Below are positions 401 through 64,000 of a DNA stretch of 64,000 nt, in pieces. The position numbers were made by a program, and so were the translations under genes. The stretch is from Basidiobolus meristosporus CBS 931.73 (lineage: Eukaryota > Fungi > Basidiobolomycota). The notes beneath the pieces were generated by a model. The model was not told where the DNA came from, made no database searches, and saw only the letters and a list, made by a program, of their open reading frames with translations. Location of the stretch: the NCBI GenBank assembly GCA_002104905.1, contig MCFE01000184.1, positions 62,001 through 126,000 on the forward strand, read 5' to 3'. Numbering within the stretch: position 1 is the stretch's first letter; each line of letters starts with the position of its first letter.

Positions 401-508
401 ACTTAGGGTTAGGGCTTGCAAGATTTGCTAATAATACTTAACCATTAAGATATTGGTATCACAAGAAAAGAGACTCAGGAGAACCCTCTCAACTTTAATA
501 GGGGAGAA

Positions 509-876
509 TGTCATGATCCACTGCTTGAATGTTTAAGTTAGATCAGCTTTTAGTCAAATCAATTAGTTATATGTTCAGCTTATGAGTCTATCAGTATTAT
601 CAATCAAATCAGTGGCATTAGTCAGCAAATGAATTAGCAGATCTTTATCAAACAGAAGTAGATATATTAGGCAGCATCTTATTGGGTGATGATGATACAA
701 TCAAATGAGTCATCAGCCACAGCCTACATTAAGTAATACAACTAGTCAGCAATTGATCTGGCAAAATGTATATAAGGAGCGGCTGGAACCTCAATAAAAT
801 CAGTTCAAGTTTTAGTGAATAAAATACTAGCTAAACTCCCTATTCCTCTACAACTCTTATACCAAGACTTGTAACA
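509..876 (+). repeat. Probable 3' LTR of the gypsy fragment at 1-400, preceded by a polypurine tract
   Basis: Purine run ATAGGGGAGAA (498-508) directly before TGTCATG; ends ...TTGTAACA; contains a TATAA-like box (~771) and AATAAA (~793); no partner LTR in the window. Confidence 0.6.
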
Positions 877-3805: not shown

Positions 3806-4989
3806 CCACTGTGGAGTTGGTGGCTTAGCTGGTCTTGACTTTCTCAGGGAGGAAAGGAGCTATATTACTGGAGGACTAGGTTGCAAGGAGCTCAAAATGT
3901 CTTTTGTTGGGTACAGGGTTTTTCATTTACCTACAGGCATTGTCCCCTTCTTCAAGGGAATATTCCACCTTTCTGGACATGGCATTGGGTTTTCCTTTTT
4001 TTACACCTGGTCTATAGGTAATGACAAAGTCAAAGCTAGACAGAAAGAGGGACCATCTGGCTTGTCTCTGGTTTAGTACTCTGAGGTGGTAAAGTACTCA
4101 AGATTTTTGTGGTCACAGCAGATCTTTATCTTTTGAGCTGCACCATTAAGATAGTGTCTCCATTGTTCAAAGGCAACAATAATTGCAAATAGCTCCTTGT
4201 TATAGATATCATAATTTACTTCAGCTGGAGTGAATTTTCAAGCATAGAATGCAATAGTGTGTAGCACATTCTTGTCATAATACTGGGAAAGGACGGCACC
4301 AAGGGCAAAGTCAGAGGCATTGGTTTCTATGATGAAAGGTCTCTTAAGGTCAGGGCGGGCATGCAGTTTGGTGCACAAGAAGAATTTCTTGATAGAATCA
4401 AAGGACTTGCACTGTTCCTTATTCCAGGCAAAGGGCAGATTGTCTGGGTGAGCTTTGCCAAGGGAGTGACTATCTTGGAGTAGTTGGCAATGAATCTACA
4501 GTAGAAGTTGGCAAATCCAAGGAAGTATTGGACTCCTTTTACAGAACAGGGAGTTCTCCAGGATTGGATGGCTTCTACTTTCTTGGCAACCATTCTTGCT
4601 CCATATGAGCTTATACAATAACCTAGGAACTCAACTTCTTTCTGGTCAAATTCACATTTTTCCAGTTTGGCATAGAGGCTAGCAGTGTCAAGCATGTTCA
4701 AGACTTTCTTCACATGGGAATTATGTTCTTCTTAAGTCTTGGAGTAGATCAGAATATCATCAAGGTAGATGACCACAAATTGATCAAGGTACTCATGGAA
4801 TATATCATTCATCAGGTGTTGAAAGACAACTGGGGCATTGGTGTATCCAAATGGCAAGCTCTATACTCAAAGTGACCATATCTTGCTCTGAAGGCAGTCT
4901 TCCATTCATCACCAGGCTTGATCATGACAAGGTTGTAAGCTCCTCTGAGGTCAATTTTAGTAAATACTTTGGCAGCACAGAGTTGATCC

Positions 4990-5338
4990 TGTTGTAAAAA
5001 TTTGTATTTCCACCTAAATAATCACCTAACTTAGTAACTTAGATCATCACCTTCAAATCCTAGAGAATACTGACCAAATTTGTTGTCGGAATTTACTTAG
5101 AATATTTTCACCAAAATGCCAGGTACCCAAATCATGAAAATTCTCAAAGTTGTCCAAACAGCCCCAAACTTTGCACACATGTTCTTGAGACCTTCCTTAA
5201 CCTATTCTACATGTTTGTAATGCCAAGACCATCTGAAAGTATAAATACTACTTTTACATTCAATAAATCATTAAGTGAAAACCACATAATCTACTTGTTC
5301 TCCCAATCACTTCCAATATCTCCAAGACTCTTACAACA
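4990..5338 (+). repeat. Copia 5' LTR
   Basis: TGTTGT...ACAACA, 349 bp, aligns without gaps to 9701-10049; followed by the PBS. Confidence 0.97.
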
Positions 5339-5350
5339 GGTTATGAGCCC
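5339..5350 (+). promoter_or_regulatory. Primer-binding site complementary to the anticodon stem-loop of initiator tRNA-Met (Ty5/Drosophila copia-type half-tRNA priming)
   Basis: GGTTATGAGCCC abuts the LTR end; it is the reverse complement of GGGCUCAUAACC in tRNA-iMet; its ATG (5343) is in frame with gag. Confidence 0.88.
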
Positions 5351-6083
5351 CAAGCAGTCACTCTCGGCAATGCCTACTACTGCTATTACTGGAATTTTTC
5401 CCTCTGCTGAAAAGTTGGATGGCTCTAACTACCAAGTGTGGAAGGTGAAGATGAAGATGCTGCTACAAGAAAGAGGCCTTTGGGATATTGTCATGGGAGA
5501 AGAATGCCCTCCTAAAAACGTGGGAGAGGAAGCCTTAAAGTACCAGAAGAAAGAACAAAGTGCCTTCAACTGCATTTGCCTTAATGTTAAGGACAAATTG
5601 CTAATTCAATGCTCAAGAGCAAAAATGGCAAAGAATGCCTGGAAAGCATTAGAAGACACCTACCAGTCATGTTCAGCTGCCAAGAAAATGTATCTGAGAC
5701 AAAAATTCCTTACTACAAAGATGCTACCAGGAGAAGAAATGCAAAATCTAATTAACAGAATTACCCTGCTGGTAGATGAGATGGAATTTGTGGGCGTACC
5801 AACTACTGATGAGGATGTGATAGTTACCATCCTGAATAGCCTGACAGACAAGTTTCAGGGCCTTGTATCAGCTTTAGAGTCCAGAACTGAAGATTTGACC
5901 TTAAATTACGTATATGGAAGGCTCCTGGATGAAGAATTAAGAAAATCAAGCGCCAATAAGAAGGAAGAAGAAAATGCTTTAATAATCAATGATAACCAAT
6001 AAAGGAGGTACCCAAGACCCTACAAAGGCAACAGCAACCTATTTTGCAACTATTGCAAAAGGAAAGGATACACATCAGACCGG

Positions 6084-7154
6084 TGTGGTGGTGTATAAGT
6101 CCAAGGGAGATATATGTCCAACACTTCTCAAGTGTTTAGTGTGTGGGGTGTTCACTGGGTGCAATAACCTCTGGCAAAAGCTTGCTAAGAATACTTCGGT
6201 TCTGTCTCTAATCTAATGTGAAGGGGAATAAAGCCACAAGCTTGTCAAGGGAAAACTATTGAGCTACAATCCCCAACTAAGTTGGCGTCTTAACAAAAGT
6301 ATGTGCTGGGTTCAGCGTCCTTTGAGATGACAATGTACTAAAGCTTCCAAAGTCAAAACAACTGTAAACTCCACCAGCAGGGACTTGATAAGAATGCAGC
6401 TGTGGTCAATAGTTACAAAGACAGAAAAGTATCTTTGCCTGTACAAGAACAAACTTGGGAAAGAATCAAATATAATAAAAGATACCTACTCTGAGTATTC
6501 CTCACAAGTAGTGCCTCCAAGGTCAGTTGGCTGTCAGCGCGGTTTCCTGGGAGTGTCCTGTGGTCTGGGGTTGGAAGTTCAGGTAGCAGCAGGTAGCAGT
6601 GATCACACTAATCAACAAGTCAGTATATTGATAAAAGGGATGATGATTTATTGTTGAGGGATAGCCTCCCTTATATACTTTTCTCACTGGCTAAGTGATT
6701 ACTAATCATGGTGTTCCAGAAGGTTCCGGAGATCAATAGAAATCTTAATGACATCAGAATGACCTAAGAATGTTCTAAGTAGGTGCCGGAAGGTTCTAAG
6801 AGGCACAGCACATCCAACCAATCAGGAATCAGTATTCTGAAACCTGTGTAACATGGGGATACCATATATGGTATGGAAATGGTAGGGATGGTGACACGGA
6901 CTGATCATGTGTCACGGGTACTGGCGCGGGTACTTGCCTAATATAGAAGTACTTATAGCTAGTAATCTTACTTAAAGTGAGGGGTAACTTATGCAATAAG
7001 GTAAGCAGGTGTGATAGTCAACCGGCTTATGGGATAGTACTGATTGGGTAAGACAAATGGGATAAAACTGAAATAAGTGTAGTAGAGATATAGGGAAGTA
7101 GAAAATAAGGGAATGAGCACATCTGTCAGTGGGTGTCACTGTCACCCCACTACA
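6084..7154 (-). mobile_element. Solo LTR-like element (1071 bp) inserted in the copia gag zinc knuckle
   Basis: Ends TGTGGTGG / CCACTACA are near-perfect inverted termini; 4-bp TSD CCGG (6080-6083, 7155-7158); removal restores FCNYCKRKGYTSDRC|LKKRDY. Confidence 0.9.
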
Positions 7155-9700
7155 CCGGTGTCTCAAAAAGAGAGATTATCAGCAAAAAAAGCCTGAATAC
7201 GGAAATGCTGCAACAACTGAAGATAGACTATTCATATCTGCACTAAATATGACCACAAACAAGGATTCTCAGATGTGGTATGTTGACTCTGGAGCTTCTC
7301 AAGACTTAACACACCAAAAAGAACTTTTTACCCAATATCAAGAAATTCCAATTAAGAAGGTTTTCATGGGTGACAATAGAACACTTGATGCAGTGGGTGA
7401 AGGAACTATCCAAGTAAACCTAAGAAGCAGTGAAGCAAGCCATACACTGACCTTTAAAGAAGTACTCTATGTACTAGAAATAGCCAAGAACCTACTCTCT
7501 GTAAGCAAGGCCACAGCAGAAGGACTCAGTTTCAGTTTTGACAATTCTGGATGCAGGATCACTGATCAAAATGGTGCCCATATTGCTTCAGGCATCAGAG
7601 ATCAGAATCTATACAAGTGGACTTATATTCCATCATATTTGGAAGCCAATATAAGTAACTTAAATGAAGAAACACCAATGCTTTGGCACAGGAGATTTGG
7701 GCACATCAATTTTGATTATTTGCGCAAAATGATCTAAGATCAGCTAATTTCTGGAGTGAAAATTGATCCCCCAGCTAATTTGGAGCACTGTGAAGCCTGC
7801 ATATATGGGAAACAAGCCAGACAATCATTCAAGAGCTCTGGGTTAATCAAAACCAAGAAAAAACTAGATTTAATTCACTCAGATCTGTGTGGACCTATAC
7901 AAAATTTATTCTTAGGTGGGATGAATTATTTAATCACCTTTATTGATGATTATACAAGATACACATGAGTCTACTTCATGGAGAGAAAGGAAGAAGCTCT
8001 GTCTAAGTTCTGGGAGTTTAAAGCCATGGTGGAGAGAGAAACTGGTGAAAAAATCAAGAAAATACTCTCAGACAATGGTGGAGCATACATCTCAAAACTC
8101 TTCACCCACTTCTGCAAAATTCATGGGATAAAGCAAGAGACTACTGTACCATGCTCCCCACAGCAAAATGAAGTAGCAGAACAAGCTAACAGATCAATAA
8201 TTGATATGGCAAGATCTATGATCCATGATCAAAAATTATCTTATGATATTTGGGCGGAATCAGTTGCCACTGCTGTATACCTTAAAAATAGGAGTTATAA
8301 CAGAATATTTTGTGATTCTACTCCATCTGAAGCATGGTATGGATACAGACCAAGTGCAGAACATCTAAGAATATCTGGGTGTACAGCATATGCCAAAAAA
8401 CTGGCTGGAAATCAGTCAAAATTTGAGCCAAAAAGTGTAAAATGCATATTTTTGGGCTACTGCAATGAGAGTAAGGCATACAGACTCTACAATACCAAAG
8501 CAAGGAAGCTGATCAAGTCCAGGGATGTGTTGTTTGATGACAATTCAAAAATTTCACAAAACATGACATCAGATGATGACAAAAATCTAATCTTAAGTCC
8601 ACCATTTGTCAGGATTGAATCAGAGCAAAACAATGAAAATTTTTTCACTCCAGAGAACTCTACAACTGTGGTTCAGCCAGAATAAGTGCCCAGGAATATC
8701 CCAGAAGTGATCATTCCTGTATCAAATGCCTGGAGATCCAATTGGACAAGAAATAACCCAAATTACTATATCAATGAGTGTACAAACTTAGCCTATGCCT
8801 ATTCAGTCCATGTTGATGACCCCAGACTGTAAAAGAGGCCCTAAATAGCCCTCAGACAAAGTTTTGGAGATCTGCAATGACTGAGGAATATCAGGCCTTA
8901 ATGGAAAATCAAACTTGGGACTTGGTCAAATTACCAATCAACAAAAAATCAACTGGATGCAGATGGGTCTTCAAGACAAAATACAAGGCTGATGGTACAA
9001 TTGAAAGATACAAAGCAAGACTTGTAGCCAAAGGATACTCTCAAACAAAAGGACTTGACTATACTGAGACCTTTGCACCGGTAGCCAAGTTTAATTCCAT
9101 CAGATTAATATTGGCTATTGCAGCCAAATATAAGTTTTTTATTCATCAAATGGATGTAAAAACTGCATTTTTGAATGGAGAACTTGATGAGGACGTGTAT
9201 ATGGACCAGCCTGATGGGTTTACTGACCAAGATAACCCCCATTTGGTCTGCAAGCTTAAAAAGTCACTATATGGTCTCAAAAAATCACCAAGAGCCTGGA
9301 ATTGCAAGATAGATTCTTAATTGGAATCTTTGAGTTTCAAAAGAAGTAATGCTAACTATAGTATATACTATAAGCCAGATAGAGCAAAACCAGTTTTATT
9401 AGCTTTTTCTCTTTTTACAGATTTAGGCCTATGTCAAAAAACGCCTATTACTTTATTTCAAGATAATCAAGGATGTATACAATCAGGTAGAAATCCAACT
9501 TTTCATGCTAGAACCAAGCACATAGATATTAGACATCATTTCATACGTGAAGCTATAGAGAATAACTTAGTTAGCTTAGTTTACTGTCCTACAGATGAAA
9601 TGATTGCAGACATATTTACCAAACCATTAGCTAGAGACAAGTTTGAATATCTTAGGTCAAAATTAGGACTAGTCAGTATGAACATATAGCTGAGTGGGAG

Positions 9701-10049
9701 TGTTGTAAAAATTTGTAATTCCACCTAAATATTCACCTAACTTAGTCACTTAGATCATCACCTTCAAATCCTAGAGAATACTGACCAAATTCCTTGTCAG
9801 GATTTACTTAAAATATTTTCACCAAAATACCAGGTACCCAGAACATGAAAATTCTTAAAGTTGTCCAAACGGCCCCAAACTTTGCACACATGTTCTTGGG
9901 ACCTTCCTTAACCTATTCTATGTGTTTGTAGTGCCAAGACCATGTAAAAGTTTAAATACTACTTGTACATTCAATAAATCATTAAGTGAAAACCACATAA
10001 TCTACTTGTTCTCCCAATCACTTCCAATATCTCCAAGACTCTTACGACA
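9701..10049 (+). repeat. Copia 3' LTR
   Basis: TGTTGT...ACGACA, 349 bp; about 22 substitutions versus the 5' LTR by manual count (~94% identity); preceded by the PPT. Confidence 0.97.
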
Positions 10050-11968
10050 GATCCAACAGGGTGTTGATTAGGGGCAAAGGGTACTGGTTCTTGATGTGAT
10101 CTTATTCAGTGCACAGTAGTCTACACACATTCTTAGGGTACCATCCTTTTTTTGTGAAAAAGAGGATTGCGGCACCAGCCAAGGACTTAGAGTGCTGAAT
10201 AAAATCTTTCTGGAAGTTTTCTTGGATTTAACTGTGGAGTTCTTTCAACTCAGGTTGCAAGAGGTGGTAGATAGGGCCAAAAGGTGGTGTTTTTCCATCT
10301 TCAAGGTCAATGGGAAAATCATATGGTGTATTTGCTGGGAGTAGTTTTGCTTTGTTCTTATCAATGACATGGGCAAACTCTTGATACCTGGCAGGTATTC
10401 CATTGGAGGGGCTTCCTTTGATGATGATGGGCTCCTGGGTCTGGAGTAGCTTGGGAAAAGATACTTCTTCACCTGAGAAGTCAAGTGCTTTCACAAAGTT
10501 GACCTGATGGACTCTGGGGAATGTCAGGGTTTGGTCTTCAAGTTGATAGCTGGGTTATGGTGACTAAGCCATGAGCTTCCAAGGACTATGGGGCTGTGGG
10601 GAGAGTTGATGATGTCAAAGGCTATTGTCTCATGGTGACCAGTACTGGACAGCTGGAGTAGACATGTCTCATTGGTAATGGCACAAGAGGAAACAGATCT
10701 TCCATCAATAACATCTATTTGGACAGGAAAGGATTTCAGGATATTGGGGATTTTGTGCTTCTGGACAAAGGACTGGTCAATGAAACAGGAGGAAGCACCA
10801 GAATCTATGAGGGCAAGGACATGGACAGGACTGAATTCAGGGATATGGATGTTGATAGGCATTCTTAAGGACTGGATGGACTTGCTAGCATATGATGCTT
10901 CTTGGATGTGTTGAATTTTCATTGGAAGGTCCAGTTGCAAGCCTGTCATTATAACTGGACACTGGAGCTTCCCAAAAGTTCTGGAGAAGGCTGTTCACTG
11001 GATGATTGCAGGAGTTTGAAGCTGGACTTCTTGTTGGGACAAGACTTGGCAAAGTGGCCTGGTTGGCCACAGTAAAGGCAGAGGTTTGCCTGTTGATATT
11101 GGGATCTTTCTTCTTTTGTAAGTTTCTTGTATTTGGCACTGTCAATTTGCATAGGGTCATCAGGCTTAGTACTGGGTGACTGAATTACTAGGAAAGAGCT
11201 TGGCTGATAAGTATGTTGGAACTTTTGTTTCTTCTGGAGAAGGCAATTGTCACATTTTATTGCTTGATATCTAGCTTTACCCAAGGTAGTTGGGTCAGGG
11301 AGTGTGAGTAGTAGGTCACTGACTTCATCCTTGAGTCCATCTTGAAACTGACTAATTAGGGCAGCATCACCCAAAGGCTCAAGTCACTGGCTTGTAGCCA
11401 GAATTCAGAAGCATAGGCAGATGCAAGTCTGTTTCCATGCTTCAAGCTCTTGATCTTGTTGGCAGCAGTTCTGGCCTGGTCAATGTTGCCACATGTTAGC
11501 TCCATATCTGTGAAAAAGGCATGGTAGTCACAGAGTAGAGGGGAGTTGGTTTCCACCAAAGGGGAGAGCCATTTCAGGGCAGTTCCAGTGAGCAGGTTAG
11601 AGATATAACAAACTTTTGCTTGATCTGTTGGGAGCCAATTGGGTTGTAGCAACAAGTGGTGTTTGACTATGTTGATGAGACCTGGGAACTCATTTTGGGA
11701 GCCACTGAACTTGGTAGTGGAAGTGAACTTGGTATCATGGTAGGAGGGAGTATGGATATACTGTTGAGTATTTTGGCTCTGAAGCTGAGCAACAGTGTTT
11801 CTGAGATCTACATTGTCTTGTTGCAGCTGGGCAAAGGCAGCCATGACACTTGCAAAGTTGTACTCTGGACTGGACATGTTGGGGTAGCAGGAGGTGGAGA
11901 GGTCTTTTGAGCTTGTTCAGGAATACTGGATACTACTGGCTAATATGTTGGTTATAAAGCCACTAATT

Positions 11969-12832
11969 TGTCAAGAATACAATTATTGAGCCACAATCCC
12001 CAACTTTGAAATAAGTTAATGTCACTTCAGAAGGTACTGGCTTTAACATCCTTTGATAGAGTATTGTACAAAAGCTTCCAATACTGTAACAACTGTAAAC
12101 TACACCAGCAGGGTAATAAAGTGAATGCAGCTTTGGCCAATAATCATACAAAGATAAAGTATCTTTGCCTTTAAACGACAAGACTAGGGAAAGATTCAGG
12201 GTGATACTTATTGCAGGTATTCCTTTACAAGTTCTTCTCAAGAACTTTGGGTAGAAGGCAGAGATCCACAGGTAAGTCAAGATCAGTCTGATAGTACTGT
12301 TATGAGTAGACACAAGGCAGGAGAGTAGAGCTAGGCAAGGCAGGACCAGGAGAGGACTTAGGTGTGGATCAACAAGGCAAGGTGTGTCTCCAAGGCAAGG
12401 CAGATTTCCAAGGCAAGGCTGTGTATTCAAGACCTGTGTTTATCAGACTGAGGAATACACAAGAGGAGATAGGACTATTTATACTTTTTGGCAATATGTA
12501 TGCTGAGTGATATTGGTTAATACCAATAGGGTTCTGAGGTGAGGCACAGTAAGTGTGCTAAGATAGAAATATACTAAAGAACAGGCTAGAATATCACATG
12601 GAAATATGTCAGGGGTCGGCTAGGTCATGTGACATGCAATTACCATATATGGTATTTGGCTACATAAGTTACAAATGGGAGCCTCCATAGAATGCTTCAT
12701 TGTGTAATGTTGACCTGGAGCTTTCCAGAAGTTGCTAGATTGTAGTGGAGCTTTCTAGAAGGAACTGGGATTTCTTCACCAACTTGATTTAGCTTGAACA
12801 TTGGAGACCAGGGATGTCATGTGATGATGACA
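11969..12832 (-). repeat. 5' LTR of the minus-strand gypsy element (~864 bp)
   Basis: TGTCA...TGACA inverted termini; lies ~90 bp upstream of the gag ATG (11877); right end abuts a copia RT fragment. Confidence 0.65.
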
Positions 12833-13212
12833 GCATGTACATGGACCAGCCAGATGAGTTTGCTGACTAAGATAATCCTCCTTTGGTCTGCCAGCTTAAT
12901 AGCCCCCTTTATAGTATTAAATAATTCCCAAGTGCCTGGAATTGCATGATTTATTCTTTTGTGCAATCTTTGAGTCACTATGTATATAGTATCTACTATG
13001 AGTGGATAGAGCAAATCCAGCTCTATTGGCTCTATATGTGGATGATACTATTTTAGCCATTAAAAGTCAAGAAATATCAGAAGTGACTATATCCAGCCCA
13101 TCTAAAGAGTTCAAGATGTATAATCTGGGAGAGCTCAGTTTCTACCTGGGGATAAACTTCTGCATAGCCACAAGTACCCAGAATATCACCCTAAGCCAGT
13201 CCAAGGATAAAC
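12833..13212 (+). mobile_element. Older copia RT remnant (target of the gypsy insertion)
   Basis: ATGGACCAGCCAGATG...CTTTGGTCTGCCAGCTTAA matches the copia RT at ~9200-9310; ORF 13002..13220 carries LALYVDD and LGELSFYLGI. Confidence 0.8.
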
Positions 13213-13560
13213 TGCTGTAAGTGTCTTGGAAATATTGAAAGTAATAGGGAGGACAAGTAGATTATGTGGCTTTCACTCAATGATTTATTGAATATAAAGT
13301 AGTATTGATACTTTTACATGGTTGTGGCACAACAAGCATATAGAATAGGCTTAGGAAGGTCCCAAAAACATGTGTGCAAAGTTTGGGTTGATTTGGACAA
13401 CTTCGAGAATTTTCATGTTCTTAGTACCTGATGTTTTGGTGAAAATATTCTATGTAAATCCCAGCAAGGAATTTGGTCAGTATTCTCTAGGATTTGAAGG
13501 TAATGATCTAAGTGACTAAGTTAGGTGAATATTTAGGCAGAATTACAAATTTTTAAAACA
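13213..13560 (-). repeat. Diverged copy of the copia LTR, minus orientation
   Basis: Reverse complement aligns end to end with 4990-5338; no matching TSD found. Confidence 0.85.
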
Positions 13561-13561
13561 T

Positions 13562-13877
13562 TTGTTGTCACAACCATGTAAAAGTGTAAGTACTACTTTT
13601 ACATTCAATAAATCATTAAGTGAAAACCACATAATCTACTTTCCCAGTCACTTCATATCAGGTACCTAGAACATGAGATTCTGATGAGTTGTTCAAGCAG
13701 CCCCACACCTTGCAAACATATTCTGTAGACCTTCCTAAGCATATTCTAGGTGCTTGTCTTGCCAAGATCATGTAAAAGTATAAATACCACTCTTGCATTC
13801 AATAAAGCATCAAGTGAAAGCCACATAATCTACTTGCTCTCCCAATCACTTCCAATATCTCCAATGCTCTTACAACA
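13562..13877 (+). repeat. Two tandem partial copies of the copia LTR 3' half, plus orientation
   Basis: 13562-~13655 (CCATGTAAAAG...CACATAATCTAC) and ~13656-13877 (CAGGTACC...CTCTTACAACA) match the copia LTR. Confidence 0.8.
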
Positions 13878-15601
13878 GAAGAAACTTATAACACTCTGCA
13901 ATATGTAGACTAGGTTCTTGGTGGTTAAGTTTGTATTACATCCTCTTATAACTACTCAACTTGCACTAGATTTGACTTGACAATATACTCAAGACTTGTT
14001 TTGTTGGATAGTGCCACATTTAGCAATGAGTGCCAAACAGTGCCATAGGGTGCCAGAAAGGCATAGCCAGCCAATACTTGGCCACAGACAGTGAGAGATA
14101 GCTCTACATCTTTAGGCAAAGTAGCCCTAGTGTTTCACCCACTGTGCTAGAGAAAATCCATGTTTTACCTTTTTTTTGGGATGCATGTATAAAAGGGAAA
14201 GAACCAGTTGGTGAAAGCTTAGAGGGTGATAGATTCCAAGATATCAGCCAAGTCATTTGGAATATTTAGAGCACACCTATTGCCCAGGAGCATCCAAATG
14301 GTGTAGTTACTGGCCAGAACTGTCTGATGATGGGTAAGTTTTTGGGAGTTTTAGAGATCAGGTATAACTCAAAGGATTTACCGGTAGTTTGCAAAGCTTC
14401 TTGGGCTGTTGGGAAATGTAGAAAACATTGCGTATTTTCTGATAACAATTCCCGTAACCGCCTGTGGAACAACAAAGAGTTATATGACAGGGCTGTAGAC
14501 AAAGAGCGACCGTTGCATTGAGCAGGTGTGATATCACCATCCACAGATGATTGACTGGACGAAACAGCTGGGACAGCTTGATGTCCGTACTCACAAACAG
14601 GTGAACAAGGTTGGACGAACTTCACTAGGGAGCAAATGAACTTGGTGGGATCAAGACACCTTTGGTTATATCATGCCGAGCTAAATATATGGAGGTGCAG
14701 TGGCAAGGAATGTACCAAAGCGACCATTTGATCATGCTTCCCAATGATCATTCATCGATAGCTAGAAACAGTTCGAGGGTATGCAGGCATATATGGGCAA
14801 TTCAAGATTCAGAGATGACTATGATAGCGTAAGAGCTCCAAGTGAGCCCAGGTACCCGTGTGGATTGATAGACACCCAGTCAGATGCTGGGCTGATTAGC
14901 GGATTTCAAACCAGTCCACCCGCTACGGAGCATGCTCAAGCTATTGGGGATTCTATGCTGTCCCGATATCTTCTGCATCGTCCACGGCCTCGGATTAGTA
15001 CGGCGGGTGCCACATGTGTGGTTGGGATGCCTTTGGTCGACCCATCATTCTGGGGCGATCCCACATGTCCGTCTCCAGCGATGATCCAGATCTAGACGAA
15101 GCAGATGGTGGGTTGATGGGCTGCAACCAATTTGGTAGACGTTGGGTTGCAGGAATGGGACTTGATCGAGGATCTGCCCAGTAGAAACCCACCAGTTCAC
15201 ACGCTTTCGAGTGATACAGAGCAGTGAAGGGTTTCCCCCACATGGCATGAACAACAAGCTTATCCCGCCTCTACACACGCGGGCACCATTGGTGTATCTC
15301 TCACACCCGCCGCTGATAAACAGTGAAACTCCCGGTACAAGCCACTGAGAATCGAAATCCCCATCGAGACCGGCCGGTTTATCAGGCGGCTGGTGATATC
15401 ATGATGATTCCCCTTCCCCAGCGGCACCTGTTGACGAGATACGAAATCCCCGGGCATCGATGGAACGGGCAACAACCTTCACACGCAACCGTCGTCGAGA
15501 TTAAGCTTAAACTGGGACTTTGCCAGCGAGATCTAAATATAGACGGCCAACGCCAGATATGGATCCAACGAATGGTGACGATGGATCGGATTCCTTCCTC
15601 G

Positions 15602-23449: not shown

Positions 23450-23976
23450 TTCTTTTTCTTTCTACTCGTGGTTAGTCCAAGTCCAAAAAAGCTTGTCCGG
23501 GCGTGTTGGATCAAAGTCTGCGTCAAAGGTTACCGAACACAGAAAATTATTTATAACACGTCTGATATGGACGGGAAGTTAACAGGTGCGTATATGCTAT
23601 ATGTATCAGGGCAAAGTGTGTATCTAACAACCAACGGTCAAGTGGGAATAGTCCACCCTAGGAAGCTCTCTGAGGATATTGAGAGTGCGGAATTACAACT
23701 AGTGTGTTAGTCTATGCTTAGAACCTCAAAACAACCTCCAACTGTTAGAGTAAATAATCACTGGATTCAATTATTCTAGAAGACTGGTTTATGTTTACTT
23801 TTATAGCAACCACTCTTCAATGATGGCCAGTAATTCTTACATAATCCGCAATATACGGTGCTAAAATCTTTTCTCAATTTTTCTTGGAACTGCGCCAATT
23901 TCGATCAAGCTATGGTTGCAACGATTATTGCTGTAGCATATGGAGGCATAATCATTTGACTGTTTATATAGAACCG

Positions 23977-26900
23977 ATGTTAACAGCGTTTGCAAGGAAT
24001 AGGCTTAGGCTTGCAGATGTTCGGCAGTATCCTGTACCAAGTCGCCTATCTGCCTTAACCTTCAGCCGCAAACTCTCAAGCGATGACACTGTGTCAGAGA
24101 TAGTAGAACCTCTCAATTCTGCCTTGGCACAGCAGGACCCAAATGCAGCTTGGCGAGCATTCACGAAAATCAAAAACAGCAAACTCGAGAGGGCCATTTC
24201 CTCTTATCAGTTTTCAGAGCTCGTACGGCTCTATTCCTCGACCAAATTGGATGGCGTAAAGAACAGAAACAGAGGCAACGAAATTATCAAGTACATGAGT
24301 TATATCGGTATCCAGCCCGAGAATCACAAACAATACGGTACACTGATATCTTTCTATGGTAACCACAGTCAGCCAAAGGAGGCCCGGGAGATCTTTCGAA
24401 GCATGGTCGAAGTTGGCTTGAAGCCCGATGCCTATGTATACACCGAGTTACTGTACGCTATAGGGAGAAAGGATTTGCCGGCAGCTTACAAGCTCTACGA
24501 AGCCATGAAGAGCAATCGCATTCACCCAAGCCTGTACACCTTCAACATCTTATTTAAGATATGTCGCCAACATCGTGATATGAAATTTTTAGCTACCTTT
24601 CATGAAGAGCTTCAAAAGGCCACATATATCACCCCGGACATTGTAACCTACTCAACATTAATAGACGCTTACGTAGCGGATGCGAATATGCCCCGCGCCA
24701 TGAAAGTGTTCGACGCATTGTCAGCACGCGATATCACTCCGAATGTTGTTACATTCAATACTCTAATACGCGGCTACACCAAGAAACGCGAAATGCACAA
24801 GGCGTTAAAGCTATATAACAAGATGATGAAGAGTGGAACGTCACCATCCATAGTAACCTATACAACGTTGATTGATGGATATCTCCATCTAAACGATGTC
24901 AAGCAAGCTATGCGTCTATACGGTGAGTTGAAAAAATCGACCCTACGGCCGGACTGCGTTCTGTTCAACACGCTTTTAAGCGGACTTGGCAGGAATTTCG
25001 AAGCTGTATACGTGAGGCAGCTCCTTAGCGATATGTCAACTTTTGAGGTCGAGCCCACCCTTGCGACATACAACATCTTGATTAATCTTTTTTTCAAGAA
25101 CAACCGATCCAGAGAAGCTATGGGGATATATAGGCAGATGAAAGCTAGGAACGTGACGCCAAACGTCCAAATATACAACACGTTGATTCACCGCAACGCA
25201 AAGGATGGTGACTTGAAGTCAGCAATGAACCTCTTCCGCGAAATGCAAATGGCCAAGATCCGACCCGATCAGAAAATATTCAATACGTTACTTCATGCCC
25301 ATGCCAGCCAAGGCAAAGTCGACGAGATACCCCGCATTCTAGACGAAATGCACGCTCAAAGGATTTCTCCCAACATTGTAACGTACAATATCATGATCAA
25401 CGCCTACCTGAAAGGCTCGAAGCTCACCGAAGCCACACGGCTGTACAACGAGATGGCAGAGAAGTCCATCTACCCAGACGTGGTTACCTTCAACTCTCTG
25501 ATCAACGCTAGCTTCAAGCAAGGGAATCTACAGAATGTCGAGAACCTCTACAGTAGTATGATCGCCAACCGCATTTCCCCCGATGTAGCCACCTTCACCA
25601 CACTCATCCACGGCTATTCGCAGGCCGCAAATGGCCAGAAAGCCCTAGAGATGTATACGCAAATGAAGAAGCTTGATATCCAGCCGAATCTCAAGACCTT
25701 TTCAGTTCTGATGAATGAGTATGCTCGCAGAGCAGACCCTCTCGGGGCCAGGGGTGTATTCGATGAGATGCTGGAAAGAGGAATCAATCCCGACGTCAGT
25801 GCCTTCAACGTCCTCATAAACACCTATGTTCAGGCCTCCAACTTGTTCCAAGCGAGAAAAATTTACGAGAAGATGCTAGAGGATCGAGTTAATCCGGACA
25901 AGATTACCTATTCCATTCTTATCAAGGCTCATACCCAAAATGGGGACATCGAGCAGGCGAGAGGGTTGCTCAACCGCATGCTGCAAAGGAACGTCCAACC
26001 AGATGCCATTGTCTTCACCTCATTGATCGATGCATACACCAGTCAGCCGGACATCTCCAGTGCAACCGCCCTTTACCAAGATATGCTTACGAGAGGAATA
26101 GAGCCGACGATTCGTACATATACCGTCTTAATAGACGCCTATGCGAAACAACGGGAGCTGGGGAAAGCCATGTCTCTTTACCAGCAGGTCAAATCAAGAA
26201 AGATGAGTCTGGACGTAACCCTCCTCAACGTTCTACTTGATGCCCACATCAAGAATGGGTTGCTGGGCGAAGCCATGGGGCTGCTTGAGGAATGGAAGGC
26301 TCGGGGCATCTCACCTGACTTAGTCACCTATACAACACTAGTCAACGGCCACACAAAGCACTCGGCGATGGATGTAGCCATGAGACTGTTCAACGACATG
26401 ATCCAGTCCAAGATTTCCCCAGACATCACCGTCTTCAATGTCCTCATCCACGGGTTTGTGGCCAACAGCATGCATTCTCAGGCCTTGTCTTTGTACCGGG
26501 AGATGATTTCGAAATACAAGGTGGACCCCAACGAGTACATTTACAACACACTCATCAGCGCTTACGCCAAGAATTCAGAGATGGAGCACGCGGTGGGCGT
26601 TCTCAACGAAATGATCTCGAAGAGCCTCTGGCCAAGCCCCGTCACATACAACGCCATTATCCACGGATATGCCACTGGCGGTGAGGCTGAGAAGGCGCTT
26701 GACACCTACCAGAAGATGAAAACCAGCGGAATTACACCAACGCTGGTAACGTACAACACCTTGATTAATTGCTTCATCGAGAATGCTGGCTTTCAGAAAC
26801 CTCGGACTATTGAGGCTGGCCTGAAGAACCGCAGCATCGCCCAGGCGCTTGATCTGTATAAAGAGATGCATACAAAGAAGATTCTCTCCGATCAGTACAC

Positions 26901-27345
26901 ATACAGCACAATCATGAAGGCTTATAGCTATAGCGGCGAGGGGGCGACGGTACTCGACCTATGGGGCCAAGCAAAGAGTCGGAGTTTCCCCAAGGACAGT
27001 ATGGAGGCAGTGATCTCTGTTTTGCTGGATAATTGTGGCTTCAACACCGACCTGTCCACTCTGCATCGCGTATGGGCAGAGCTCAAACGCGACAACTATG
27101 TGCTAACCGAGAATAACTACAATTCATACATCGAGGCCCTATGTCGACTTGGCTCCTTCGAAGAAGGGACCAAGGTATTCACCACAGAGATGAAAGATGC
27201 CGGGATCACGGCTACTCTGAAGACCTGTCGCACCATTTTCACGCCATTGAAGGCCGCCAACAAAGCTCGGTTGGTCCAGGAAGCGTATGACTTCGTTCGA
27301 AGCCAATACCCACAACTTTATTCGGAGCATTATGAACCGATTTAG
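23977..27345 (+). CDS. Intronless pentatricopeptide-repeat protein, 1122 aa, ~25-28 P-type PPR motifs, probably mitochondrial
   Basis: Tandem 35-aa repeats of the form PDxVT[YF]NTLI...A..LY.EM...G; first ATG at 23977 gives an Arg/Leu/Ser-rich presequence-like N-terminus (MLTAFARNRLRL…). Confidence 0.95.
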   Translation: MLTAFARNRLRLADVRQYPVPSRLSALTFSRKLSSDDTVSEIVEPLNSALAQQDPNAAWRAFTKIKNSKLERAISSYQFSELVRLYSSTKLDGVKNRNRGNEIIKYMSYIGIQPENHKQYGTLISFYGNHSQPKEAREIFRSMVEVGLKPDAYVYTELLYAIGRKDLPAAYKLYEAMKSNRIHPSLYTFNILFKICRQHRDMKFLATFHEELQKATYITPDIVTYSTLIDAYVADANMPRAMKVFDALSARDITPNVVTFNTLIRGYTKKREMHKALKLYNKMMKSGTSPSIVTYTTLIDGYLHLNDVKQAMRLYGELKKSTLRPDCVLFNTLLSGLGRNFEAVYVRQLLSDMSTFEVEPTLATYNILINLFFKNNRSREAMGIYRQMKARNVTPNVQIYNTLIHRNAKDGDLKSAMNLFREMQMAKIRPDQKIFNTLLHAHASQGKVDEIPRILDEMHAQRISPNIVTYNIMINAYLKGSKLTEATRLYNEMAEKSIYPDVVTFNSLINASFKQGNLQNVENLYSSMIANRISPDVATFTTLIHGYSQAANGQKALEMYTQMKKLDIQPNLKTFSVLMNEYARRADPLGARGVFDEMLERGINPDVSAFNVLINTYVQASNLFQARKIYEKMLEDRVNPDKITYSILIKAHTQNGDIEQARGLLNRMLQRNVQPDAIVFTSLIDAYTSQPDISSATALYQDMLTRGIEPTIRTYTVLIDAYAKQRELGKAMSLYQQVKSRKMSLDVTLLNVLLDAHIKNGLLGEAMGLLEEWKARGISPDLVTYTTLVNGHTKHSAMDVAMRLFNDMIQSKISPDITVFNVLIHGFVANSMHSQALSLYREMISKYKVDPNEYIYNTLISAYAKNSEMEHAVGVLNEMISKSLWPSPVTYNAIIHGYATGGEAEKALDTYQKMKTSGITPTLVTYNTLINCFIENAGFQKPRTIEAGLKNRSIAQALDLYKEMHTKKILSDQYTYSTIMKAYSYSGEGATVLDLWGQAKSRSFPKDSMEAVISVLLDNCGFNTDLSTLHRVWAELKRDNYVLTENNYNSYIEALCRLGSFEEGTKVFTTEMKDAGITATLKTCRTIFTPLKAANKARLVQEAYDFVRSQYPQLYSEHYEPI

Positions 27346-58198: not shown

Positions 58199-59528
58199 AT
58201 GTCTCTTCCTCTCAAAAATATGATATGGATGGCTCTTGAGCCTATCCTCAAGCTGCTGATCAATGCTGGTAACTACGCGTTTCTTTTTCCTTTGTTTCTT
58301 GCTTATGGATACTTACTCTTATTTTCCAACAGCTGGTGGCTTTGCATTGGCGAGAGCAGGGATTATCACTCCGGCCAGTGCTAGAACTGTATCCAAGATC
58401 ATCGTAAACTTTCTACTGCCTTCGCTGTTGATAGCAAAGCTTGTGCCACACCTTGATCTGTCCGAGATGAAGAACATGGGTGTATCCATTCTTGTTCTCG
58501 TGACGTATATTCTGGTTGGCCTGGTCGGCGGCCTTCTCATGAGGCGTTTCCTTCCCCTCCCTGATGGTTTCAAGGGTGGGTTTGTAGCCATGAATGTGTG
58601 GGGAAACTTCGCCGATCTCCCGCTTGCAGTGTTGATGTCTATTGGAAATAGTCCGCCATTTCTTCCCGGCGAGTCTTCCAAAGGGTCTGCCTACACCGCC
58701 ATGTTCTACGTGGTCTTCAATTTTACCCTCTTCGTCTGCGGTGGTTCAAGCCTTATCGAGAATGATTTCATAAACCCCACCTTGCTCCCAGAGACACAGC
58801 ACGTAACGGAATTGCCGGAGAAAACGGCTGATTATCCTAAAACCGATGCCACCCAGGGTGCTGAACCCCCAACTGCTGTTGACCATCTGGATAGGGTGAT
58901 CAGAATCCATGCCAACGACTCAAGCGCTACTATCGTAGACCCTTCCAAGGGTGCTTCAAAATCTTCAAACAGTGCACAGAAGTGGAAGGCTGGACTGAAG
59001 AAGTTCCTCAAATCTCTCATGTACCCACCTAATCTGGCCACTTTCATTGCTATTGCTATCGCATTGATTTCACCGTTGAAAGATCTCTTTGTCGTCAAGC
59101 CCGGTAGCGACCACCAACCATGCCTTAATTGGGTGCTGGAAAGTATCATCACCATTTCCGGCGGTTACGTTCCCCTTGCGTTTATGAACCTTGGCGCCGC
59201 TTTATCGAAGATCAGTGTCCGCCGTGTACCCAAGGTTGCTGCTATCGCCATCACTATCTTCAAAATGTTTGTGTTCCCATTGATGGGCATTGGATTTTGT
59301 CAGTTGTTGACATATCACACACCATTGATCGACCCGGAGGATCGCGTTTTCCGTTTCCTTCTCATGTTTGGTTCTACTGTACCTTCAGCTACTACGCTTT
59401 TGATTTTGACTCAAGTTTACAATCCCACCGGAAAGTCCAAGGAAATCGCCGGAATTCTGGCTCTTCAGTATATTGTGGGTTTCTTCACCATGGTTATATC
59501 TATGGTTTTCATCCTAAATATGTTATAA
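58199..59528 (+). CDS. Auxin-efflux-carrier / PILS-Ecm3-like membrane transporter
   Basis: About 10 hydrophobic segments; VNFLLPSLLI, GNFADLPL, LGAAL, VPSATT crossover-type motifs; one 5' intron. Confidence 0.85.
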
Positions 59529-59671
59529 TAACGAATGTAAATTGAGATAGACTAATGTAAATTATCAATAATAAAACCTCTTATTCCTTATTTCCTTTGG
59601 ATTTTTATTTCCCCATCAACTCTACCAAAGCATTCGATCAGCAAGTACGCATTATACATGTTCTGGGGTGC

Positions 59672-62600
59672 TTAAGTAGACACGCTTTGGAGATATTTAT
59701 ACAATTGTTGTCGCATCCGCCTACAGTTCCTGTGAGCATCTAGTGGTACATACTCTCCATGTTGACTCTGAAGGGTCCTGAACGAAGAGAGGGATCTTTT
59801 CAAGTATTTGACTGATGTTAAATTTGACATTTCCCTGCCTAGTTGTACGGTGGTGTCCAAGATTGGCGTAAGATTTGCCGGCCGCAGGTTCTTTAAGCAC
59901 GTCTATTCCAATGTTAGTTCGCTCGAGTTTTGACAAGCTGAGAGGATATCATGGACGCTTACCAAGAGCTCGGTCCCATTTAGATCCATCAATACCTCTC
60001 GTTGACTTACCAAGACTGCATTGATCAATGTGTAGAGATAGCCTGGCTCCTGAGTCACTAAATGGTCCCAGATTCGTGCCCATCTAGCCGAGCTAAATGT
60101 CTCAGAAAACAAAGTTTCAACCATTGCCCATATATAAGCCTAAAGGTGAAGCAAGATCAGAGCTTGGTGACTGGTTTGTTTTCTTGGCAAGTTACCTTTG
60201 GAGTGAGCTTGTTTCGCAGAAAGTGATCATACAGCGCTGGGTCTTGAATTTGCAATATATTATCGGCCAAAGTGAGGGGGAGTTGGGGAGGTTCGTTGCC
60301 ATCCCAAAAGCCTTGGGTCCAGTTTACTGCAGGTGCATCAGTAGTTTGCCTAAAAACAACAATTTAGACTGGATTTCAACTTACCGAGAATTGTCGCCAA
60401 CATTTCAAACGTCTCGCATGTATGCGCGTTGAACAGTATAACAAACGGAAAGATCATCTTGGTCAGGGTTTCCGTATGCTTGACATGGCCAAAAACGCTT
60501 GGTGACCAATAAGCCAAACAGGAGATTGTTCTTTGAGAGAGAGAGAGAGAGGGTCTCATGTTAGCCCGATTTAAAGCGTCTTCAGTGGTATATATGCACA
60601 CACCTTTTCATTAGATGTTCGAGCTCTTTATCCTTCAAATGAAACAGGTCCTGGAATTTTTCAATTACTGGATGATCGCCTTTGATCTCCAAATTATGAA
60701 ACGCCTCTCGATCACCAGGAATGTCCAGAAGCTGCTTCCAGATAGCCAACCTAAGAAGATTTCTGACTTAGCTAGTTATACCATACATGCATATATAGGT
60801 AAACCTGAGCACTTGCCTTTCCCGAGAAGGATACCCCTTTTGTTTACGTAAATATTTCCACAATATTTCCTTGCTAAGGAAGGAAGTTCCCTACAGAATA
60901 GCTGAATATCTGGTAAAGGTACGCAGTATAGCATTCATAGAGCCGTACCGGTACCGTCGAAAACTGAGAGCTGTTGACTGAGTTTTCGGAGAGTTTTGAG
61001 GTCTTTGTTGAAGTGGGTGTGTGTTGTTCAGGATCTTTTGGGGTTCCAAAACCTCCATCTAGTGTTGAAGGTATACCAATCAGAAGAGCCGCAGTACAGT
61101 TACTGGCTATTGAATGCGCATACCTGAACGTTTTGATGAGCCCTTGTAGCTGAATAGACTATCTAATAGCCCAGTGCGATATGAGCTTTCATGGTGCTAA
61201 ATTCTGTAAAGGATGATGGCTATGTATTACCAATATCTTCATTTTGGAAGTTCGACGGCTTCATCTGTTTGGTAGGTTTTGGAAAAACATCGTAGTTGGA
61301 TGGACTTTCTACAAAAATTAGAGTTATTCAAAGGTGCTTCAAGCTGCACACCGCTTTCGCCTCACCTGCTTCTCTCTTTATCTTCATAAACGGTTTAGAC
61401 TCCTCTGTGATCTCTAATTTTCAAGTAGGCCGATTAGTGTGCGGGATATGAGGGTACAGCAGAAGGGATTACCTTCAGATTCAGGGACATCCAGACACTT
61501 CGATACTTCCAGATATGCAGGCAGTTCTCTTTTAAATTCCTGAAAAGATGGGGTGCTCAGCATTGGTATGTTCCTTTTTATCTGGTAATAAATACTCATT
61601 ACTTCTCCCAAAAAATCTGATGTTGCCCAAAGCAAGATCACCGAGTTCTGAAGCACACAGGTAGTTACCAAGTAGCCTCCATCAAAAGAGATTTCGAACA
61701 GTGATATCTATAAAAGCTCAATAATCATTGAATGCAGGTATAGAAATCGGCATCCTCCCCACCTTAAAATCAATATCTAGCTGTTGTACTTGGTCGAGTC
61801 TTTCAATGTCTAGAGAATAGAGTATCCCTTTGCTGTTCAAAACCAGTATTTTCTGACATTCGGTTAATCGCAATATTTCGTCAAGATACTCTATTGTGCC
61901 TCATACCTTGCTACTGCCAACAAATTTCATGTCGATGATTCCGCATTGGAAGCACTCGTGATTACATTGGCCAAGAGACTCTTGAGACTTCATGTCCATA
62001 ACTGTCAGTGAACTACGATGCTCGATGAATTAAAACCTATAAGCCGGTTGGATTTCGAGCGGCCGTATGCGACTTACTCTGTCCCGTAGACAAATAATCC
62101 GTCTTCGTGATTGAATGCAATATTCCCGCCAGGATTTGCTTCTTCCCCAGGCGTCGTTGGCTGACAGTACTCCCAGATACATTCGAAATTCTGACTGTTC
62201 CAGAGTGTGATCGCACCGTCGTTATGAATGACATAAATGTACTTGCCAGTGGCCGAAAAGCTCGCCTAGTTATAATGTTCTTTAGCTCCCTATTCTTCCA
62301 TGACCCATTTGAGGCATTGAAATTACCTTTTGAACTCCTACTGAATTTGAGACAAGTACTCTTTTACGACTCCAGTTTTGACGATCCCAAATGGTTGCAT
62401 CACTGAAAGTAGTAAGTAGAGCTAAGGAGCTAGAGGGATCTACTGAAATATGCCGAATTGGAAACTTGTGAGCCTTTAAGATTTTTGCAATCGGTTTTCT
62501 GGTGTCTAGAGAAATACGAACGTCTGCTTCAATAAAAGTATATACTTTGTCATTCCGAAACAGTCATTACCAAGATTATAACACCCAATCGATGTATTTG

Positions 62601-63104
62601 AGAAGCCAATAATCAATTCTCGTGTATTCTTCGAGCTATGGATGCTAATTGCTGTGCCAGCTATACCGATACGCGCAAGTAGCCAGAATCTTTTGTGGGT
62701 TCGTAAGCTCAACCGCGTCATAAACAAATATCTATTGTGAACCTAACTGATTGGCTTCAAAGTCGAAGATGTACAGGTTCCCCAAATGATCTACAGTAGA
62801 AAGCACTGCTTCTGACCAGACTTGTGCTGCAGGGGTGCTAGTCTTCTTAAAGAAGCTCATGTCACTGAAACGGACACTTTTTGGTGACGGAAGTCTTTCA
62901 CTTGGCGTACGCGAATTAGAGATCATAGCTAAAGGTCTGATATTATATATTAGCATTTCATACAGATCTATCAAAGCTTCAACTCTCCACTCACTCTACG
63001 TTGAGGTTGGATTTTTTCTCTTTTAGATTCTTGTAATCCCATATTACACCTTTCTTAACGTCGCCAATGAACACCACACTGGTGGTTCTTTTCTCACTCT
63101 CCAT
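59672..63104 (-). CDS. TBC1D31: WD40 + TBC protein, orthologue of TBC1D31/WDR67, without the C-terminal coiled coil (multi-exon)
   Basis: Spliced segments match recalled human TBC1D31 in order: VDHLGNLYIFDFEANRF (GDHQGNIYVFDLHGNRF), RKRVLVSNSVGVQK (RKRKLNIRQSVGIQK), GYPSRERLAIWKQLL (EYPTKYRMFIWRSLL), RTISCLAYWS (RTLSALAHWS), WAMVETLFSE (WPLLETVFSE). Confidence 0.82.
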
Positions 63105-63304: not shown

Positions 63305-64000
63305 TCATATCTTGGGAATCTTAAGAGATTGTGAGATCATCAGTGTCCCACTCAACGCATAGCTTAATACAAGCGGGTGGAAAGTCAGGGTATTGGCGAG
63401 ACTTGCAACTCCGCCTGGTAATGCGGTCTGGATGTCTCCCACATATACAAGATACCCCAGATAGCCGGTGATTAGGAGGGTGGTAGGAATGGGGGTTCCT
63501 TCAAAGTGCTTTACCTTACCACTTTCGTCTTTTGGCAAGGACGCAACTGTTGCATTATATCTGGCCAATCGAGCGATTCCACAGGACACAAAGTAAAGGA
63601 GAACACAGATATCAATAACGGAACGGAGCCCCAAAGTAAACCCGAACACTGCAGGAGCGACCCCAAAAGATATCTGTTTAAACAATAGGCTTGGTTAGAG
63701 CGCTCTGTGTCAGGGCCAACATTACTAATACACGCACCAAGTCAGCTAAAGAGTCCAACTCCTGGCCTAGCAGAGAAGAATTTTTACGCCACCTAGCTAC
63801 TCTACCGTCCATAAAGTCAAAGAAGGTTCCCAATGGGATTAGCCAAAAGGCAACCCATAGGTATACGGTGTTGTTCTCTATGAGATATGACATGGAAGCA
63901 AATATGGAGCCAGTTCCACAGGTGCCATTTAACAATGTCAAGAAATCGGCGAGGTGAAACTCACGGACCAAATTGAAGTGGTTATTCAGATATTCTACAG
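63305..64000 (-). CDS. CHO1: CDP-diacylglycerol--serine O-phosphatidyltransferase (fungal PS synthase); 5' end outside the window
   Basis: CDP-alcohol phosphotransferase motif DFMDGRVARWRKNSSLLGQELDSLADL|ISFGVAP; CGIARLARYN; KHFEGTPIPT; ISQSLKIPKI. Confidence 0.93.

Follow-up and report, generated by a model that had tools for sequence, protein, structure and literature searches.

We found that the genome of Basidiobolus meristosporus CBS 931.73 (GCA_002104905.1, contig MCFE01000184.1) very probably carries, judging by sequence, a tail-less ortholog of TBC1D31/WDR67, a protein recognized in 2024-2025 as the core of the linker that holds centriole triplets together (PMC12290023, PMC12506977). 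The host is a non-flagellated fungus, as the first-pass annotation of this DNA had supposed, and it apparently keeps a TBC1D31 gene that is intact by its predicted frame. In the 64-kb stretch of DNA analyzed here (the window), the predicted gene runs on the minus strand from position 63104 to 59672 and encodes ~817 aa in one frame over 17 exons with GT-AG introns; in the predicted product, a TBC (RabGAP-like) domain comes after a WD40 propeller at the N-terminus. The C-terminal tail of TBC1D31 forms the central filament of the A-C linker (PMC12506977), and in this flagellum-less fungus it is precisely the filament-building part that would have been removed. The gene would represent a natural separation-of-function allele, with propeller and RabGAP domain but without the central-filament helix. 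It would be a specific structural marker and not merely a cell-cycle kinase, and with this one protein an old question becomes testable, namely whether the nucleus-associated organelle, which bears microtubules, derives from a centriole.

The gene model was obtained by hand splicing with a phase check (Table 1), which replaced the wrong 303-aa model of a naive intron-minimising dynamic program. All 16 introns are canonical (GT-AG) and 54-88 nt long, and the frame is kept for 817 codons; because the splice sites were picked to preserve the frame, its intactness counts for less as evidence. In a codon-usage test trained on the other long ORFs of the window, the modelled frame scored best in 16 of the 17 exons and the introns scored negative. 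The splice between exons 2 and 3 yields an N-x-F-W junction, as in the relatives. The propeller and TBC parts lie on the same strand in the expected order and are joined by the frame-keeping predicted model, which, together with collinear profile matches, bears out the succession of WD40 repeats and TBC domain seen in the first-pass annotation.

The public annotation breaks the gene into two pieces, both unnamed, of 252 and 173 aa. Taken at face value, these models describe two independent neighboring genes, one WD40-only and one TBC-only, and the stop at 61718, to which the public model continues from exon 7, is reachable if the weak GTGGGG donor is unused. Both public models, however, interrupt conserved sequence: the 252-aa model starts only after exons 1-2, and the 173-aa model starts downstream of exon 13, the exon with TBC motif A, and is therefore N-terminally truncated. 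Exon 8 is missing from both. A WD40 part followed by a TBC part, collinear on one strand, was found in five other loci (L003-L007), and in the intron-poor L006 and L007 the two occupy adjoining ORFs; the Tetrahymena and human proteins also have both domains (PMC12506977, PMC12290023). We consider two separate genes very unlikely and a single functional gene probable. The Obelidium mucronatum locus is likewise annotated as two pieces (215 and 709 aa). Gene predictors split TBC1D31 in early-diverging fungi, so that proteome-based presence/absence profiles will under-call it.

Table 1. Predicted exons of the TBC1D31-like gene and neighboring features (positions in the window).
Feature	Position	Strand	Remarks
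Exon 1	62995..63104	-	ATG 63104; donor GTGAGT; in-frame codon score +21.5
Exon 2, first propeller blade	62748..62936	-	P0070 residues 101-119 match the exon end (E 5e-4)
Exon 3, WD40 blade	62571..62689	-	Profile of relatives E 3e-11; within public model P0001
Exon 4, best-conserved WD40 blade	62327..62505	-	Profile E 1e-14
Exon 5, WD40 blade	62078..62265	-	Profile E 3e-6; tblastx matches L002-L005
Exon 6, diverged propeller part	61907..62012	-	In public model P0001; in-frame codon score +11.0
Exon 7	61763..61852	-	Spliced at 61763, donor GTGGGG; codon score +11.3
Exon 8	61473..61707	-	78-codon open frame; codon score +17.4 (other two frames, -41 and -18)
Exons 9-11, low-complexity linker	61413-61366, 61308-61231, 61142-60949	-	GT-AG sites keep frame
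Exon 12, TBC lead-in	60805..60890	-	Keeps frame; codon test ambiguous
Exon 13, TBC motif A (R-x-x-x-W)	60604..60750	-	Profiles E 3e-8 and 3e-7
Exon 14, TBC Gln-finger region	60385..60530	-	Profiles E 3e-10 and 3e-9; alignment A2
Exon 15, TBC C-half	60196..60326	-	Profile E 3e-6; tblastx L004; weak Pfam RabGAP-TBC match
Exon 16, TBC C-half	59963..60139	-	Profile E 4e-16, 55.9 bits
Exon 17, diverged RabGAP end and stop codon (59674-59672)	59672..59902	-	76 codons; codon score +4.2
Intergenic gap, 143 bp	59529..59671	.	Up to stop of convergent Mem_trans transporter
Mem_trans transporter, convergent	58263-59528	+	ORF

The family assignment was examined by searches with single window exons, relatives' proteins or profiles as queries. 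Profiles made only from relatives in other organisms matched seven window exons (exons 3, 4, 5 and 13-16) in collinear order, and these seven were the top matches in the six-frame translated window, a similarity far above chance. At the N-terminus, exon 1 and the Obelidium mucronatum protein P0070 align over residues 1-22 of both (BLASTP, E 3e-4), and exon 3 was matched by L002, L004 and L005 (tblastx). Profile A2, which covers the N-half of the TBC domain and includes window exons 13-14, was run with an E limit of 10 against the 177,635 sequences of PDB; it found only 9qzc_7 (E 2.2e-33) and 9qzc_AE (E 1.5e-26), and no other TBC structure matched. The two chains are the Tetrahymena A-C-linker proteins TBC1D31A/B, 9qzc_AE being titled 'TBC1 domain family member 31'. 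The same chain was the best single-stretch PDB match of WD40 profile A1 (E 3.9e-16, profile positions 18-221), the rows above it being repeat proteins whose scores were summed over many short matches. A family profile of the post-TBC region found, in PDB, only Tetrahymena TBC1D31A/B (E 2e-10 and 1e-7). With family profiles containing no window rows, exons 13-16 scored 23-56 bits, compared to 12-16 bits or nothing with Pfam RabGAP-TBC; exon 16, the final stretch with proven homology, reached 55.9 bits versus 16.2 bits with the generic Pfam model. Judged by these profiles, the TBC domain stands nearer to TBC1D31 than to other TBC subclasses, and the propeller is related specifically to that of TBC1D31. 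The nearest named relative, P0039, is entered at NCBI as 'TBC1 domain member 31 [Nowakowskiella sp. JEL0078]'. The PDB-wide restriction of the profile matches to Tetrahymena TBC1D31A/B and this chytrid name agree with the TBC1D31/WDR67 family proposed in the first-pass annotation.

Profiles alone were informative in PDB: single window exons did not match the Tetrahymena chains directly, a search with P0001 was uninformative, and the link from the window exons to Tetrahymena runs via chytrid-like intermediates. Exon-by-exon Pfam searches gave weak generic WD40 and RabGAP matches only, and ESM Atlas returned generic WD40 and RabGAP clusters, with a TBC1D31 cluster as one of 10 structural neighbors, a result that does not discriminate. 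Exhaustive phmmer with exon 4 (59 aa) gave the self-match P0001 and the single-stretch relatives P0039, P0048, P0056 and P0066; the remaining matches, mostly generic multi-repeat WD40 proteins by Pfam, were discarded. This search missed even the Obelidium ortholog and so has no bearing on absence in other fungi. No metazoan sequence was found in word-index searches, which operated with a length window and a shared-word limit.

Exons 6-12 and 17 gave no significant similarity to relatives by BLASTP, small profiles or the relatives' profiles, and their basis is the open frames, the splice signals and codon usage, and for exons 6 and 7 also public model P0001. BLASTP and small profiles gave no support for exons 7, 8, 12 and 17, and exon 12 had no BLASTP match to P0074; exons 7-8 had been aligned to L003 by eye, and this alignment was dropped as evidence. 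Exon 8 probably holds the final blade and the beginning of the linker. Exons 9, 10 and 11, with weakly positive codon scores (+3.9, +7.8 and +2.9, respectively), are where the model is least certain, and exon 11 may use other acceptors. The regions equivalent to exons 6-12 and 17 are conserved among the relatives themselves, and their undetectable homology in the window could reflect relaxed constraint.

Such divergence would also be seen in a decaying relic, that is, a TBC1D31 gene drifting toward a pseudogene after true centrioles were lost and making no working protein. The lost tail, the ~300 middle residues and last exon lacking detectable similarity to relatives, the degenerate post-TBC motif and the failure of gene predictors to make a single model all fit a relic. 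Against decay speak an 817-codon frame over 17 exons that is interrupted only by canonical GT-AG introns of narrow size range, codon usage that favors this frame in 16 of 17 exons and is negative in introns, and seven exons in which 31-52% of residues are still identical in chytrid-like relatives, although the lineages separated very long ago. Predictors also fail in this way in Obelidium, a chytrid with flagella that presumably uses the gene. We judge decay to be improbable and prefer a functional gene.

The TBC domain of the Basidiobolus protein is predicted from its residues to be catalytically dead. In alignment A2, read by eye, the Y-x-Q position is T-L-T in the window and Y-L-P in relatives, and no Arg is found three residues past the motif-B Asp. 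In the TBC-L/WDR67 subclass, the catalytic Arg and/or Gln are missing (PMC3655817).

The conserved post-TBC motif corresponds to approximately residues 692-707 of the Tetrahymena chain, which is the RabGAP end (profile; PMC12506977). In the window gene this motif is degenerate; the relatives start a helical tail at this point, and the frame of the window gene stops ~21 residues past it. A tail of at least 150 aa is kept in all four relatives with sequence past the TBC domain. The praja2 site at human TBC1D31 residues 940-970 (PMC8126939) falls in the part that is missing from the Basidiobolus gene. Searches with the relatives' profiles found no tail-like sequence anywhere in the 64-kb window, and the 143 bp to the stop of the convergent gene could not accommodate 150 or more tail residues. 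The first-pass annotation had placed the end of the frame at 59672 and the convergent transporter stop at 59528, and these coordinates are correct, with 143 bp between the stop codons; its statement that the coiled-coil tail is absent and has no space holds by the stop position, the gap and the tail search of the window. As the long C-terminal helix/coiled coil is missing, the gene is classed as a tail-less TBC1D31 variant and not as a typical family member.

A component of the A-C linker would be expected to lie between microtubule triplets and to depend on CCDC77, MIIP and POC1. In papers from 2025, TBC1D31 is described as a core structural protein of this linker in centrioles (PMC12290023, PMC12506977), which dates the praja2-PKA-OFD1 scaffold frame adopted in the first-pass annotation, and it is reported to be missing where the linker is missing, e.g., in C. 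elegans (PMC12290023). In Tetrahymena, the RabGAP domains of TBC1D31A/B and the POC1 C-terminal helix bind the C-microtubule wall, and a WD40 domain reaches the CEP135-containing A-link (PMC12506977, PMC12290023). The Basidiobolus nucleus is accompanied by a centriole-like body with a non-9x3 microtubule arrangement (PMC3281927). Our literature search turned up no paper on centriole genes of Basidiobolus and none of relevance on fungal TBC1D31.

The protein could also be kept for work unconnected with any centriole-like body, such as that of a pseudo-GAP scaffold for membrane traffic or signaling. For human TBC1D31, published reports describe a part in EGFR trafficking that depends on Rab22A (PMC11516053) and activity at centriolar satellites (PMC8126939), and canonical A-C-linker assembly is impossible without the filament-forming tail. 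On the other hand, in human as in Tetrahymena the family is a structural core of the A-C linker (PMC12290023, PMC12506977), its absence is reported together with that of the linker in C. elegans (PMC12290023), and both of the named fungal relatives found (2/2) are from flagellated chytrids. We regard a working ortholog kept for such a role as unlikely.

The Basidiobolus protein would retain the microtubule-binding RabGAP module and the A-link-reaching WD40 module, but not the filament helix; given this combination, it would most likely sit on non-triplet microtubules in the nucleus-associated organelle and serve there as a short adaptor or lateral connector. It would be unable to form a longitudinal filament and would offer no praja2-type docking site. 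On balance, we favor the reading of one TBC1D31 gene of ~817 aa, with propeller, diverged linker, dead TBC domain and no tail, whose product may act as a lateral connector at the nucleus-associated organelle. Considered separately, the role at this organelle, which is drawn by analogy to the linker proteins, is only tentatively proposed. It is more doubtful still that the nucleus-associated organelle is a remodelled centriole with a TBC1D31-based lateral connector, in which the tail was lost alongside the triplets and the long A-C linker. If this were true, the tail-less gene would be a molecular fossil of the dismantling of centrioles toward fungal spindle pole bodies.

Human TBC1D31/WDR67 is a protein of 1066 aa, and the Basidiobolus protein (~817 aa) is without its coiled-coil regions and praja2-binding helix. 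In centrioles, the human protein (125 kDa) belongs to the core of the A-C linker (PMC12290023), and its subclass is TBC-L (PMC3655817); compared by literature description, its order of WD40 propeller and then TBC domain is the same as in Basidiobolus. Tetrahymena thermophila TBC1D31A/B (PDB 9QZC and 9QZF; 937 and 1202 aa) share this domain order as well. They continue, however, into a C-terminal helix of 230 to ~500 residues that is bundled as the central filament (PMC12506977), whereas the Basidiobolus protein stops at the RabGAP end. The chytrid proteins from Nowakowskiella (P0039) and Obelidium (L004) are 31-52% identical to the Basidiobolus protein over the conserved exons, in collinear order and with matching N-termini. 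Conservation of the middle blades and linker is seen between these chytrids but does not extend to Basidiobolus, and Obelidium, unlike Basidiobolus, has the conserved post-TBC motif and a long helical tail. The hosts of the chytrid orthologs are flagellated, whereas Basidiobolus is non-flagellated.

Translation of the minus strand of the window between 63104 and 59672 revealed many short open segments, with WD40-like peptides first and TBC-like peptides after. In the model, spliced by hand, 17 exons are separated by 16 introns (all GT-AG, 54-88 nt), and a phase-by-phase check found the predicted frame unbroken over 817 codons, with splice sites that were selected for keeping the frame. In a codon-usage test trained on the other long ORFs in the window, the modelled frame was favoured in 16 of the 17 exons (exon 12 was ambiguous); in-frame scores were positive for all exons and negative for almost all introns. 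Exons 9-11, with alternative acceptors, are the least certain part of the model. Comparison with the relatives found no homology support for exons 6-12 and 17, though these stretches are conserved from one relative to another. The stop codon of the convergent Mem_trans transporter is 143 bp away, and the first-pass annotation thus had the coordinates and description of the locus right. With stop codons this close, the two 3' UTRs probably overlap. Upstream, a CDP-alcohol phosphatidyltransferase gene ends ∼200 bp from the start codon, so the promoter region is very short.

Features of the window and of related loci
Feature	Location	Strand	Description
TBC1D31-family gene (assigned by profile)	window 63104-59672	minus	ATG at 63104, stop at 59674-59672
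Public model P0001	window 62721-61718	minus	252 aa, WD40 fragment
Public model, RabGAP-TBC product	window 60611-59903	minus	173 aa
Mem_trans ORF	window 58263-59528	plus	intronless, 421 aa, auxin-efflux-carrier-like, convergent
CDP-alcohol phosphatidyltransferase gene	window 63305-64000	minus	PF01066, public annotation
Open frame	window 23845-27342	plus	1166 codons
Low-G+C segment	window 1-14000		G+C 0.36-0.44 vs 0.44-0.56 elsewhere in window; strong local skews
Obelidium mucronatum TBC1D31 gene	L004:10001-13866 (GCA_025765595.1)		annotated as 215 aa + 709-aa RabGAP-TBC product
Metagenome orthologue	L006:2747-5516 (JGI 3300047131)		intron-poor, near-complete, long helical tail
Metagenome orthologue	L007:299-2849 (ENA ERZ19026238)		intron-poor, near-complete, long helical tail

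An exhaustive search with exon 4 identified P0001, a public protein that matches part of the gene exactly and that NCBI names 'WD40 repeat-like protein [Basidiobolus meristosporus CBS 931.73]' (contig MCFE01000184.1, GCA_002104905.1). Taken at face value, P0001 and the 173-aa RabGAP-TBC product would be two separate genes, which is a rival reading of the locus. Both models interrupt conserved sequence: exons 1-2, which align with the N-terminus of a protein from a chytrid, precede the P0001 Met, and exon 13, which encodes TBC motif A, precedes the Met of the 173-aa model. This second model also reads through the last intron. In the intron-poor metagenome contigs the gene pieces adjoin on one strand. 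Gene predictors likewise split the Obelidium gene into WD40 and TBC fragments, and a contig end truncates the Nowakowskiella model; phylogenetic profiling of the TBC1D31 family from proteomes will therefore be unreliable in early fungi.

Among the single-stretch exon-4 matches and the results of word searches were fragments belonging to Nowakowskiella sp. JEL0078 (a protein that NCBI calls 'TBC1 domain member 31'), to Obelidium mucronatum and to several metagenome/Logan contigs. The 59-aa exon-4 query was insensitive and missed the Obelidium orthologue, so absent matches in other fungi are uninformative. By tblastx, the gene gave collinear matches of 31-52% identity to L002-L005 (loci of relatives); L003-L005 matched both propeller and TBC exons, and L002, whose contig extends no further than the propeller, matched in that part alone. 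The source organisms of L006 and L007 are chytrid-like, and these loci would be useful as full-length references for family profiles.

Pfam searches with single window exons gave weak generic matches. The decisive family test was profile searches of the PDB, where the A-C linker of Tetrahymena is modelled in 9QZC/9QZF (PMC12506977). For the N-terminal half of the TBC domain, the profile combined the relatives with window exons 13 and 14, each in its own row; with E up to 10 allowed, it matched 2 of the 177,635 sequences in the PDB, namely 9qzc_7 (E 2.2e-33) and 9qzc_AE 'TBC1 domain family member 31' (E 1.5e-26), and other TBC-domain structures were absent from these matches. The best single-stretch match of the propeller profile was 9qzc_AE (E 3.9e-16), and the post-TBC-region profile significantly matched only the same two chains. 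Profiles built without any window sequence recovered exons 3, 4, 5 and 13-16 in collinear order as top six-frame window matches (E 3e-6 to 4e-16). The link to Tetrahymena is indirect, by way of chytrid-like intermediates, since single exons, searched one per query, gave no match to the Tetrahymena TBC1D31 chains in the PDB. In the profile alignment, residues other than R and Q occupy the Arg-finger and Gln-finger positions, in line with the published lack of the catalytic Arg and/or Gln in TBC-L/WDR67 (PMC3655817). On these sequence profiles, we assigned the gene to the TBC1D31 family. Several matches of the 1166-codon frame to the TBC N-half profile were repeated but weak and below threshold (full E 0.003, with 0 single domains significant); the matching stretches are probably repetitive or low-complexity sequence instead of a TBC domain.

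The relatives share a motif, G-x-Y-P-x-F-N-x-Y-P..., where the RabGAP domain ends; the profile match places this motif at about residues 692-707 of the Tetrahymena chain. The Tetrahymena RabGAP module ends at residues 691 and 705, where long helices bundling into the central filament begin (PMC12506977). In Obelidium, L005, L006 and L007 (4/4) a charged helical stretch of 150 residues or more follows the motif. In the Basidiobolus gene the last proven homology ends within exon 16; the 76 codons of exon 17 show no significant similarity to the relatives, the motif is there in degenerate form only, and the stop codon comes ∼21 residues after it. Searches of the rest of the 64-kb window with profiles and tail segments of the relatives gave no match, and the genes on either side are too close for a tail to fit. 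A decaying relic is one rival reading of the locus, to be set beside the open frame and its codon usage. The earlier proposal of a truncated TBC1D31 orthologue and possible basal-body relic stands in part: for the family (PDB profiles), for the non-flagellated host and for the absent tail (window searches and flanking genes). We concluded that this is a tail-less TBC1D31 variant in an unexpected host; the family is known and the variant is new, recognised neither in public annotation nor in the searched literature.

McKerracher and Heath reportedly described, in 1985, the Basidiobolus nuclear-associated body as a ring of 11-12 singlets. This body is 'superficially like a centriole', with a different microtubule arrangement (PMC3281927). 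We tentatively suggest that the propeller and pseudo-GAP modules still present might serve as a lateral connector or adaptor on its microtubules, and that triplet loss could have made the filament-forming tail dispensable. In a rival reading, the modules might instead have a non-centriolar role. WDR67/TBC1D31 belongs to the A-C linker core, where in human cells it and the proteins CCDC77 and MIIP depend on one another (PMC12290023). The Tetrahymena structure has a RabGAP dimer of TBC1D31, together with the POC1 helix, on the C-microtubule; a WD40 domain extends to the CEP135-containing A-link, and the C-terminal helices make the central filament (PMC12506977). In human TBC1D31, the praja2-binding helix (residues 940-970; PMC8126939) lies in the part of the tail that the Basidiobolus gene lacks.
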